This document shows positions 49,743-52,586 of a stretch of 64,000 bases of DNA, one piece after another; position 1 is the stretch's first letter; the number at the start of each line of letters is the position of its first letter. Both the position numbers and the translations under genes were made by a program. The notes beneath the pieces are model-generated. The model saw only the letters and a list, made by a program, of their open reading frames with translations. It made no database searches and had not been told where the DNA came from. The DNA lies in the sequence record NC_019405.1; one strand, written 5' to 3'.

Positions 49743-49780
49743 AAGGCGGCTCCCAGCAAGGAGACCGCCTTTTCTTTTTC
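49743..49780 (+). terminator. Rho-independent terminator
   Basis: AAGGCGG-CTCC-CAGCAA-GGAG-A-CCGCCTT plus TTCTTTTT. Confidence 0.75.
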
Positions 49781-49791
49781 GCGTTGATCAT

Positions 49792-49867
49792 CGGGGTGTA
49801 GCTCAGTCGGTAGAGCGCTCGGTTCGGGACCGAGAGGCCGTGGGTTCGAGTCCCGCCACCCAGACCA
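49792..49867 (+). tRNA. tRNA-Pro(CGG)
   Basis: CTCGG-TTCGGGA-CCGAG. Confidence 0.9.
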
Positions 49868-49874
49868 ACGCCAT

Positions 49875-49949
49875 CGGGATGTAGCTCAGCGGTAGAGCGC
49901 GCGGCTGGGGGCCGCGAGGCCGCAGGTTCGAGACCTGCCACCCCGACCA
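49875..49949 (+). tRNA. tRNA-Pro(GGG)
   Basis: CGCGG-CTGGGGG-CCGCG. Confidence 0.9.
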
Positions 49950-49954
49950 ACAAC

Positions 49955-50027
49955 GCTGCTGCGCCTGGATTGGCGCCGGCCCCTTGGTATGGGGAAGTAG
50001 AAGGTTCAATTCCTTCCGGCAGCACCA
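49955..50027 (+). tRNA. tRNA-Thr(GGT), atypical D arm
   Basis: CCCC-TTGGTAT-GGGG; GCTGCTG/CGGCAGC acceptor. Confidence 0.75.
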
Positions 50028-50032
50028 ACAAC

Positions 50033-50102
50033 GCCGATGCCTCTAGGAGGGAACGTCTTTCGTAATGACGTCAGGTGGGTGCGATCCCCACTTTCGGCTC
50101 CA
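50033..50102 (+). tRNA. Degenerate tRNA-Thr(CGT)-like element
   Basis: GCCGA/TCGGC acceptor plus CCA; ACGTC..TTCGTAA..GACGT arm; T loop GTGCGAT. Confidence 0.5.
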
Positions 50103-50139
50103 TCAAGATGATCGAGGAGAGATCGTAGACGAAACAAAT

Positions 50140-50226
50140 GGATGTGTCACCTCAGTGGCGAGAGGACCGGGCTCTTAATCCGGCAGCGAAAGCTCATCGT
50201 GGGTTCGAGTCCCACCACATCCTCCA
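50140..50226 (+). tRNA. tRNA with Lys(CTT) anticodon and long variable arm (87 nt)
   Basis: CCGGG-CTCTTAA-TCCGG; V arm AGC-GAAA-GCT. Confidence 0.85.
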
Positions 50227-50232
50227 AACTAT

Positions 50233-50323
50233 GCACGAGTGACCCGAGCGGCGAAGGGCGTCGACTTTTAATCGACTAGGCGTCCGCGCCTCACCGAGGG
50301 TTCGAGTCCCTCCTCGTGCTCCA
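50233..50323 (+). tRNA. tRNA with Lys(TTT) anticodon and long variable arm (91 nt)
   Basis: GTCGA-CTTTTAA-TCGAC; V arm AGGCG..CGCCT. Confidence 0.85.
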
Positions 50324-50329
50324 GGTTGT

Positions 50330-50413
50330 GCGAAAGTGGCGGAACGGCAGACGCACTGGTCTCAGGTACCAGCGACTTCGGTCATGAGGGTTCGAATCCC
50401 TCCTTTCGTACCA
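50330..50413 (+). tRNA. tRNA-Leu(CAG)
   Basis: CTGGT-CTCAGGT-ACCAG, type II. Confidence 0.9.
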
Positions 50414-50420
50414 ACGACAT

Positions 50421-50505
50421 GCCGGTCTGGCGGAAATGGCAGACGCAGTGGCTTCAAGTCCCACCGCCTTCGGGCGTCCCGGTTCGAGGCCGGGGACCGG
50501 CACCA
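50421..50505 (+). tRNA. tRNA-Leu(CAA)
   Basis: Loop TTCAAGT, type II. Confidence 0.88.
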
Positions 50506-50510
50506 TTTGA

Positions 50511-50599
50511 TGCGAAGTGGCGGAACTTTGGTAGACGCACCGGCATGAGAGGCCGGCGCCCTTCGGGGCGTGAGGGTTCGAGTCCCTTCTTCGCGACCA
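50511..50599 (+). tRNA. tRNA-Leu(GAG)
   Basis: CCGGC-ATGAGAG-GCCGG, type II. Confidence 0.85.
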
Positions 50600-50606
50600 A
50601 TATCAT

Positions 50607-50678
50607 GCCGGACGGCGCAGGCGCGCGGGGGAGGTTGTGTCCCTCCTTGGCTCCGATCGTTACGGAGGTTCGGTTCCA
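50607..50678 (+). tRNA. Degenerate tRNA-His(GTG)-like element
   Basis: GCCGGAC/GTTCGGT acceptor plus CCA; GGAGG-TTGTGTC-CCTCC; CTCCG-ATCGTTA-CGGAG T arm. Confidence 0.55.
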
Positions 50679-50682
50679 TTAC

Positions 50683-50753
50683 GGGGTATGCGCAGGGCGC
50701 AGGCATCCTTTGCAAGGAAGTCGGGGTGGGTTCGAGTCCCACATACTCCACCA
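50683..50753 (+). tRNA. tRNA-Ala(TGC), reduced D arm
   Basis: G3.U70 acceptor; loop TTTGCAA. Confidence 0.75.
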
Positions 50754-50757
50754 ACAT

Positions 50758-50845
50758 GGTAGGTTGGCTGAGAGGCCGAAGGCGCCCGTTTCGAAAACGG
50801 GAGGACCGCAAGGTTCCGTGGGTTCGAATCCCACACCTACCTCCA
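50758..50845 (+). tRNA. tRNA-Ser(CGA)
   Basis: CCCGT-TTCGAAA-ACGGG, type II, U73. Confidence 0.9.
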
Positions 50846-50849
50846 ACAT

Positions 50850-50937
50850 GGATGTATGGCTGAGAGGCCGAAGGCGCCCGCTTGGAAAGCGGGTGAACCG
50901 CAAGGTTCCGTAGGTTCGAATCCTACTGCATCCGCCA
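50850..50937 (+). tRNA. tRNA-Ser(GGA)
   Basis: CCCGC-TTGGAAA-GCGGG, type II. Confidence 0.9.
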
Positions 50938-50941
50938 ACAG

Positions 50942-51028
50942 GGTAGGTGGTTCCGGCCTGGGGCCGGACCCGGTTGCTAACCGGCCGGAGCCGCAAGGCT
51001 TGGGGTTCGATTCCTCCTCCTACCGCCA
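50942..51028 (+). tRNA. tRNA-Ser(GCT), probable 8/4 fold with extended D stem
   Basis: CCGG-TTGCTAA-CCGG; D stem TCCGGC/GCCGGA. Confidence 0.8.
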
Positions 51029-51439: not shown

Positions 51440-51540
51440 GTCCCACTCCACGTTCAACCAGTTTCGCGAAGGCCCGCCTGGACACCCAGGCGGGCCTTTT
51501 CGCATTTCAGCTTCAGATCACGGAGATCGCCAACAGACAC

Positions 51541-52332: not shown

Positions 52333-52415
52333 GCCCTGGTAACCGAGGGGGATTACGAATCCCTTAGTCGTAGCAGGAGTTGAAAAGGGTGGTTCGAATC
52401 CACTCCAGGGTGCCA
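52333..52415 (+). tRNA. D-armless tRNA-Arg(ACG)-like element with ~23-nt variable loop
   Basis: GCCCTGG/CCAGGGT acceptor plus GCCA; GGGA-TTACGAA-TCCC; GGTGG-TTCGAAT-CCACT. Confidence 0.65.
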
Positions 52416-52422
52416 AATTCAT

Positions 52423-52505
52423 AGCGCGCAGGCCGAGCAGGATCATCGTCAGGCGTCGCCCTCCGAAGGCGAAGAGGCCCGGTTCGAGTCCGGGGCGCGC
52501 TGCCA
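52423..52505 (+). tRNA. tRNA-Arg(CCG) with enlarged D loop
   Basis: TCGCC-CTCCGAA-GGCGA; AGCGCGC/GCGCGCT acceptor. Confidence 0.75.
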
Positions 52506-52508
52506 TTC

Positions 52509-52586
52509 GCGCGGGTAGCTCAATGGACCCAGAGCAGCCGTCTTCCACACGGAAGGTTGGGGGTTCGAATCCCTCCCCGTGCGCCA
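52509..52586 (+). tRNA. tRNA with Gly(TCC) anticodon, G3.U70 pair and G73
   Basis: GCGCGGG/CCCGTGC acceptor; CCGT-CTTCCAC-ACGG. Confidence 0.75.

Follow-up and report, generated by a model that had tools for sequence, protein, structure and literature searches.

Two adjacent tRNA genes of the Caulobacter phage phiCbK combine lysine anticodons with class II bodies, i.e., with a long, helix-forming variable arm, and they belong to a large family of long-arm tRNA-Lys genes found in phage tRNA arrays. To our knowledge, the textbook view reserves the long variable arm in bacteria for the Leu, Ser, Tyr, and Sec tRNAs. The window, i.e., the whole stretch of 64,000 nt that was analyzed, is the left 64 kb of the phage genome (NC_019405 / JX100813, positions 1-64000, with identical coordinates).

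The annotation of the genes is already known: GenBank labels both as tRNA-Lys (D865_gt008 for CUU and D865_gt009 for UUU), and Gill et al. (2012) listed both without comment and took the phiCbK tRNAs as codon supplements (PMC3556154). What appears to be new, judging from the sequences, is phage tRNA-Lys with class II architecture as a large family. We found no description of class II Lys tRNAs in phages in the full-text literature, phage tRNA and defense papers included and subscription journals mostly outside, and the phiCbK RNA-seq paper makes no mention of tRNA.

Anatomy and array setting of the two genes

The features of the two genes and of the run that contains them are as follows.

49792..51028, + strand: tRNA run containing both Lys genes (ARAGORN, including the relaxed threshold; GenBank)
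50140..50226, + strand: tRNA-Lys(CUU), D865_gt008, 87 nt including the encoded CCA, class II body (ARAGORN, Rfam, GenBank)
50147..50149, + strand: acceptor-to-D connector TCA of the CUU gene, comprising U8, one inserted nucleotide, and A9 (Infernal alignment)
50174..50176, + strand: anticodon CTT of the CUU gene in a canonical 7-nt loop, CTCTTAA (ARAGORN, Infernal)
50184..50198, + strand: variable region of the CUU gene, 15 nt, with 1 nt, a 3-bp helix AGC/GCT, a GAAA loop, and a 4-nt tail CATC (fold anatomy, compensatory changes)
50223..50226, + strand: discriminator U73 and encoded CCA of the CUU gene (sequence anatomy)
50233..50323, + strand: tRNA-Lys(UUU), D865_gt009, 91 nt including the encoded CCA, class II body (ARAGORN, Rfam, GenBank)
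50240..50242, + strand: acceptor-to-D connector TGA of the UUU gene, 3 nt (Infernal 1-nt insertion after U8)
50267..50269, + strand: anticodon TTT of the UUU gene in the loop CTTTTAA (ARAGORN, Infernal)
50277..50295, + strand: variable region of the UUU gene, 19 nt, with 1 nt, a 5-bp helix, a 4-nt loop, and a 4-nt tail CACC (fold anatomy)
50320..50323, + strand: discriminator U73 and encoded CCA of the UUU gene (sequence anatomy)

Both genes have a 7-bp acceptor stem, a 3- to 4-bp D stem (CCTC/GAGG in the CUU gene), G18G19, a 5-bp anticodon stem, U33, A37, a 5-bp T stem, and a normal T loop. On Rfam RF00005, the CUU gene scored 51.5 bits and the UUU gene 45.2 bits, against a gathering score of 29, and the full model (1-71) was covered. 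A first-pass annotation, made from the sequence, had described them as two Lys-anticodon tRNAs with long-arm bodies of 87 and 91 nt, and ARAGORN, Rfam, and GenBank agree with it. Their variable regions of 15 and 19 nt, with helices of 3 and 5 bp, are of the class II kind (longer than 10 nt and helix-forming), and both anticodons carry the U35 and U36 of Lys. The U73 and the 3-nt acceptor-to-D connector that had been pointed out are seen in both genes; Infernal independently put a 1-nt insertion after U8 in each, with three unpaired nucleotides before the D helix and one after it. The acceptor pairs G1-C72, G2-C71, and A3-U70 are present in the CUU gene as claimed, together with C11-G24, and the UUU gene has G1-C72, C2-G71, and A3-U70.

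Two other readings of the genes were rejected. An ochre-type TTA anticodon register would need a closing C-C mismatch in the stem, and in a tRNA-Sec or allo-tRNA fold (8/4, 9/3, or 8/5, with a 6-bp D stem for Sec) the eighth acceptor pair cannot form, the genes being 7/5. The Rfam tRNA-Sec model gave no match on the two Lys genes.

ARAGORN called 24 tRNA genes between 47.8 and 52.6 kb of phiCbK. The run at 49792..51028 reads Pro, Pro, Thr-like, Lys, Lys, three Leu, Ala, Ser, Ser, and Ser(GCU)-like, with both Lys genes 6 to 8 nt from their neighbors and 6 nt between the CUU and UUU genes. Annotated terminators bracket the run (49745-49769 and 51465-51502). No tRNA-repair genes adjoin the array, whose flanks encode a lectin-like protein, PhoH, and head-tail proteins.

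The label of the UUU gene depends on the record. Identical or nearly identical sequences are labeled tRNA-Ser ("codon recognized: UCG") in Ccr32 (L002:3034-3124) and Ccr29, tRNA-Lys in most records, and are unannotated in several (JX163858, S2L, and RBC phages among the records compared). Neither ARAGORN nor Infernal reproduced the Ser, codon UCG label of Ccr32 and Ccr29. That one gene carries the label tRNA-Lys, tRNA-Ser, or none is a warning to annotators.

Many other tRNAs of the phiCbK array are structurally odd. Unannotated, aberrant tRNA-like genes with CCA ends lie at 49955-50027 (Thr(ggt)), 52333-52415 (Arg(cct)), and 52423-52505 (Arg(ccg)); in phiCbK, ARAGORN called all three at the relaxed threshold only, and a counterpart of the Thr(ggt) gene was called at normal settings in Karma, Rogue, BL10, and BL57. 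Near 50602-50690 there is a degenerate His-like sequence. At 50942-51028 there is an unannotated 87-nt tRNA-Ser(GCU)-like gene with an encoded CCA, again called by ARAGORN at the relaxed threshold only; its D arm is tRNA-Sec-like (by eye, a stem of about 6 bp and a 4-nt loop), and it scored 44 bits on the Rfam tRNA-Sec model, below the gathering score of 47.

At 52509-52586, phiCbK has a gene that is called as tRNA-Gly(tcc) and whose orthologues in Karma, Rogue, BL10, and BL57 are tRNA-Arg(tct). Aligned together, the five sequences have a mean column identity of 97%; what sets phiCbK apart is a T-to-C change at anticodon position 36 plus two changed bases in the variable loop. The gene is thus an Arg-type body bearing a Gly anticodon, which explains why phiCbK has been reported as the sole member without an Arg tRNA, and it is a better mistranslation candidate than the Lys genes.

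Orthologues and the wider long-arm family

The same array slot, after Pro (in some phages also Thr) and before three Leu, holds an 87- to 91-nt Lys tRNA in many relatives: Karma, Swift, and Magneto (Shapirovirus); Rogue, BL10, and BL57 (Poindextervirus); Colossus and PW (Colossusvirus); BL9 (Bertelyvirus); and the Brevundimonas phages Gurke and Kikimora. The occupied slot spans four Caulobacter-phage genera of the Dolichocephalovirinae as well as Brevundimonas phages. Between phiCbK and Gurke, the CUU gene shows 11 differences. Eight of these combine into four fully compensatory pairs, half of them in the anticodon stem and half in the variable-arm helix; the other three are unpaired, and no pair is disrupted. 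The arm helix of the CUU gene is AGC/GCT in phiCbK, GAC/GTC in Gurke, and GGAC/GTCC in Colossus, and the UUU orthologues in Rogue, Karma, and BL57 keep the arm as a 4-bp version. An assembly artifact, which the first-pass annotation had named as grounds for giving up its interpretation, and gene decay are excluded, because the Gurke differences are compensatory or unpaired and break no pairs; an arm helix maintained by compensatory change, both in orthologues and in the wider family described below, goes far beyond chance. The Brevundimonas phage Domovoi and three relatives (L011:4418-4508) have an unannotated homologue of the CUU gene with 76.9% identity and A73; its T loop is deviant, ARAGORN did not call it, and it may be a decaying copy.

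We defined a long-variable-arm tRNA-Lys family by a Lys anticodon loop, an arm of 3 to 5 bp, usually with a GNRA tetraloop, a tail of 3 to 4 nt, a position within a tRNA array, and a body that remains similar when the anticodon is masked. Both phiCbK genes have these properties. BLAST with the CUU gene found long Lys tRNAs in Ruegeria, Rhodobacter, Mesorhizobium, Xanthomonas, and Microcystis phages and also long tRNA-Asn in Erwinia phages; against plasmids, it gave one marginal partial match. IMG/VR was scanned with two patterns. The first required the CUU loop and the T loop plus an arm loop GAAA and hit 47 viral contigs, each with an ARAGORN Lys(ctt) call of at least 83 nt. The second required no more than a UUU loop spaced from the T loop as in class II tRNAs; it hit at least 119 stretches, and a long Lys tRNA was called in 60 of the 114 new loci among the matches listed. 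The two scans together gave at least 132 distinct long Lys tRNAs in at least 105 loci besides the window, with a locus GC content of 24 to 62%.

The architecture is stereotyped. Among the matches listed, the arm usually has one 5′ nucleotide, 3 to 4 bp, a tetraloop, and a 3- to 4-nt tail; the loop is most often GAAA, also where the pattern left it free, and the tail is most often CACC, CATC, or CAAC. Among the matches listed, 134/134 long Lys tRNAs have the anticodon loop CTCTTAA or CTTTTAA; it is altered in 4/27 class I phage Lys tRNAs of the first sample. Of the 134 listed, 103 have A73 and 29 have U73. The register with a 1-nt-longer connector occurs in 37/132 long Lys tRNAs versus 2/75 class I Lys tRNAs among the matches listed.

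An ungapped alignment of 39 members (38 distinct sequences) was examined for covariation against 500 shuffles. Each of the three core arm pairs showed four to five pair types and 16 to 19 double-sided changes, with at most 2 of the 38 sequences unpaired. Pairing over the whole structure was 92.7%, versus 65.7% in the shuffled alignments (none of the 500 attained 92.7%) and 33 to 46% with partners slid, and the observed value was reached by 0/500 shuffles on four of five whole-structure measures and by 1/500 on the fifth. The arm helix and the structure are under active maintenance by compensatory change.

In 185,579 bacterial and archaeal species genomes, the first pattern had only nine matches, all of them inside arrays in which 6 to 18 tRNAs span no more than 8 kb; at least one of the nine is a phage contig binned into a MAG. 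The lineage is confined almost entirely to phage-type tRNA arrays. The long-arm Lys tRNA is a common part of such arrays over a GC range of 24 to 62%, selected, and near-absent from cellular chromosomes. In an isolate genome, a Thalassospira xianhensis contig (L067:5509-5596) has a chromosomal tRNA array with a long tRNA-Lys(UUU) whose acceptor stem and U73 are exactly those of the phiCbK CUU gene and whose D arm and variable arm differ. An annotated 87-nt tRNA-Lys(UUU) of the Erwinia phage pEp_SNUABM_01 (L015:1325-1411) owes its length to a large D-loop insertion and not to a variable arm, and ARAGORN did not call it.

Phage arrays also contain long-arm tRNAs with Asn, Trp, Cys, Thr, or Ile anticodons and, now and then, with others. 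Examples are L005:1038-1123, L010:617-702, L015:62-148 and 1474-1559, and L016:753-838, with more in L017, L022, L035, L037, L043, L047, L056, and others. Over two samples, and among the matches listed, the long-arm share was 13/56 for Asn, 12/35 for Cys, and 9/44 for Trp. On these long-arm isotypes, N73 is G in 7/7 Asn and 4/4 Trp, mostly U in Cys, and A in Ile; in the two long-arm His tRNAs, it is C in one and A in the other. Because the N73 of long-arm isotypes mostly follows the rule of their own anticodon, the arm behaves as an add-on to tRNAs that keep their identity. The long Thr(UGU), Ile(UAU), and Asn(GUU) tRNAs are each one anticodon change from Lys. In the masked-anticodon comparison described below, the next-best profiles for the CUU gene were long-Thr (37.9 bits) and long-Asn (28.9 bits). 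These sequences suggest that the anticodon may have shifted within one long-arm lineage.

Charging of the two tRNAs

Lys identity lies in the anticodon plus A73, and Leu and Tyr identity require A73 (PMC9976931). Both phiCbK genes have U73 and thus depart from the A73 rule of the E. coli class II LysRS, as they do from the A73 of tRNA-Leu and tRNA-Tyr. The rules for class I LysRS, derived from Borrelia only, make U35 and U36 decisive and A73 marginal (PMC9976931), and Caulobacter encodes a class I LysRS (PMC1475646). U73 would be no obstacle to lysylation, since N73 is marginal for an enzyme of this class. The first-pass annotation had flagged U73 as anomalous; the base is there as described, yet it is recurrent, being found in every long Lys tRNA from alphaproteobacterial genome contexts except one with C73. 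Class I tRNA-Lys of bacteria and phages resemble the phiCbK genes in their anticodons and anticodon loop, and most long forms share their A73. They differ from the phiCbK genes in having a 4- to 6-nt variable loop, a 2-nt connector, and A73 (27/27 in the first sample) in place of U73.

Both tRNAs are, in our judgment, quite probably charged with lysine. Profile HMMs of 26 isotype groups, built without phiCbK relatives and with the anticodon masked, placed long-Lys first for both genes. The CUU gene scored 54.9 bits on long-Lys, versus 24.4 on Tyr and 24.0 on Ser, and the UUU gene scored 22.3 bits on long-Lys versus 17.2 on Ser. The Ser (42 to 49 bits) and Leu (23 to 53 bits) genes of phiCbK, used as controls, were classified correctly. 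Pairwise global alignment to the nearest isotype gave mixed best matches with low scores, and the masked profiles were used instead. If the long-arm Lys tRNA of phage arrays does carry lysine, both LysRS classes tolerate a class II body.

The first-pass annotation had proposed that the CUU gene could insert Ser at AAG. For such a mistranslator, SerRS would read the long arm together with G1-C72, G2-C71, and A3-U70 and would place Ser at AAG and perhaps at AAA. Ser identity indeed depends on how large the arm is and how it is oriented, together with G1-C72 and G2-C71, the anticodon being irrelevant (Giege and Eriani 2023; PMC9976931), with G73 a moderate determinant and the tertiary shape read by E. 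coli SerRS (PMC9976931). The CUU gene has these three acceptor pairs. Its acceptor had been called almost identical to that of the neighboring tRNA-Ser(GGA); the likeness is real but modest, at 5/7 identical base pairs versus at most 4/7 for two other, unrelated tRNAs of the array, and it is suggestive at most. Neither gene has G73, a weak criterion since 16/88 phage tRNA-Ser among the matches listed have U73, and U73 also occurs in phiCbK's own tRNA-Ser(CGA). The Ser label in Ccr32 and Ccr29 is a further point in favor of Ser, although neither program reproduced it.

Other features speak against Ser insertion. The UUU gene has C2-G71, and G2-C71 occurs in 50/134 long Lys tRNAs (about 37%) versus 85/88 phage tRNA-Ser among the matches listed. 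Phage tRNA-Ser arms mostly have 4 to 7 bp and a 3′ tail of 0 to 2 nt, as against 3 to 4 bp and a tail of 3 to 4 nt in long Lys tRNAs, and both phiCbK genes lack a Ser-type arm, with a 4-nt tail each (3 bp in CUU and 5 bp in UUU); the geometry is that of tRNA-Tyr, and E. coli SerRS reads the shape. The masked profiles favor long-Lys, and N73 tracks the anticodon on the other long-arm isotypes. The phage's use of AAG is normal, at 2.79% of codons in the 36 window ORFs with GC3 above 0.75, and both Walker-A lysines found in the window are encoded by AAG. We therefore regard a Ser-inserting role as improbable, although some partial cross-serylation of the CUU gene may occur, given its Ser-like G1-C72, G2-C71, A3-U70, and C11-G24. 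The earlier interpretation was thus supported in part: its serine half did not hold up, and its other half, i.e., nuclease evasion by rebuilt Lys tRNAs, is plausible and fits the distribution of the family.

The precedent behind the Ser idea comes from elsewhere. Nematode nev-tRNAs and bacterial allo-tRNAs have class II bodies with unexpected anticodons and are charged according to the body. Their identity elements remain those of Leu or Ser, and in allo-tRNAs the acceptor/T helices are 8/4 or 9/3. The phiCbK genes resemble them in combining a long arm with an anticodon outside Leu, Ser, and Tyr, but differ in being 7/5, in their short, Tyr-like arm, and in U73, and the family as a whole lacks the Ser acceptor pairs. 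Allo-tRNAs are mentioned in PMC7590224.

The class II body might also attract LeuRS or TyrRS, a reading to which we give almost no credence. The arm does have the geometry of phage and bacterial-type tRNA-Tyr (1 nt, 3 bp, a tetraloop, and a tail of 3 to 4 nt), U35 is common to the Tyr anticodon, and most long Lys tRNAs elsewhere have A73 among the matches listed. However, tRNA-Tyr has GUA and A73, and the CUU gene scored 24.4 bits on its masked profile versus 54.9 on long-Lys; masked Tyr and Leu scores were low in general. Both window genes carry U73 in place of the required A73 (PMC9976931), which is found in 42/43 phage Leu and 11/11 phage Tyr tRNAs.

Possible roles of the variable arm

Taken as a whole, the observations are best explained, with a chance that we put slightly above even, by functional, Lys-charged elongator tRNAs whose arm is an anti-determinant. 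Both tRNAs would serve as phage elongators reading AAG and AAA and would be charged with lysine by the host class I LysRS, which would read mainly U35 and U36. The variable arm leaves the core at nt 44 to 48, directly beside the 3′ strand of the anticodon stem, and together with the 1-nt-longer connector it would form a structural anti-determinant against host factors that attack tRNA-Lys. PrrC-, RloC-, PARIS-AriB-, or Schlafen-type anticodon nucleases are candidate attackers, and the phage would keep decoding Lys codons while the host tRNA-Lys is cut.

tRNA-Lys is the most frequent nuclease target known and a preferred target of several defense nucleases: PrrC cuts the anticodon loop, the PARIS nuclease AriB cuts near nt 41, and the Schlafen nuclease RorSlfn5 cuts at 30/31 (PMC11555353; PMC13056530). 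Phage-borne Lys tRNAs rescue infection from PrrC170 and PARIS; the known cases are a T5 tRNA-Lys variant against PARIS and the tRNA-Lys of SP15 and other phages against PrrC170 (PMC11555353; PMC13056530). Like these, the phiCbK genes are Lys tRNAs of a lytic phage in a tRNA cluster and would presumably keep up Lys decoding. The T5 and SP15 effect has been ascribed to expression level or to sequence and loop differences, with no mention of a long arm (PMC11555353; PMC13056530). Unlike them, as far as their descriptions go, the phiCbK genes have a class II arm and a longer connector, and they are known from sequence alone.

The restriction to viruses, the coexistence with class I forms, the 134/134 canonical anticodon loops, and the retention of the UUU gene would all fit a shielding arm. 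Read from the distribution alone, a protective role of the arm falls somewhat short of an even chance, and the low-frequency long arms on isotypes not known as nuclease targets count against it. More tentatively, the arm may be a portable shield, with phages recasting vulnerable tRNAs of one or two isoacceptors, chiefly Lys and also Asn, Cys, Trp, Thr, and Ile, into a class II shape that tRNA-directed host nucleases would refuse and cognate synthetases would accept; this is possible but doubtful. If the shield reading is true, it would represent a new kind of RNA-level counterdefense, and the rule that limits class II tRNAs of bacteria and their viruses to Leu, Ser, Tyr, and Sec would have a widespread natural exception. 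If the arm does block nucleases, it would provide a sequence-level marker for phage-tRNA counterdefense that can be counted in genomes and tracked in tRNA sequencing.

A serious rival, although we consider it unlikely, is that these are ordinary codon-supply Lys tRNAs and that the arm is an inherited scaffold, neutral and spread with mobile arrays, with no defense role. This agrees with the reading of Gill et al. 2012 (PMC3556154) and with the AAG share given above; the family is old and horizontally transferred, and other tRNAs of the array are odd too. Given these odd neighbors, relaxed constraint is a possible contributor. However, the arm helix is held by compensatory change, and the family is nearly absent from cellular chromosomes. 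AAA accounts for only 0.20% of codons (24/11,793) in the same 36 ORFs, yet the UUU gene is conserved across phiCbK-like phages, and codon supply alone explains it poorly. Among the matches listed, and in the stretches fetched, 53/106 loci with a long Lys tRNA also hold a class I Lys tRNA, in 29/106 with the same anticodon, and this coexistence suggests a non-redundant role.

We consider a non-translational role highly improbable. In that case, the two RNAs would deliver no amino acids; they would serve as tRNA-shaped decoys, binding or titrating a host nuclease or a different tRNA-binding factor, or would give rise to regulatory fragments. The unusual body, with its extra connector nucleotide and extra arm, and the several aberrant tRNA-like neighbors would suit such a role, as would the Domovoi-type Brevundimonas homologue, with its deviant T loop, that escapes ARAGORN. 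Against this, the 7-bp acceptor, G18G19, the anticodon loop with U33 and A37, the T loop, and the encoded CCA are all intact in the phiCbK genes, and purifying selection acts on every helix.
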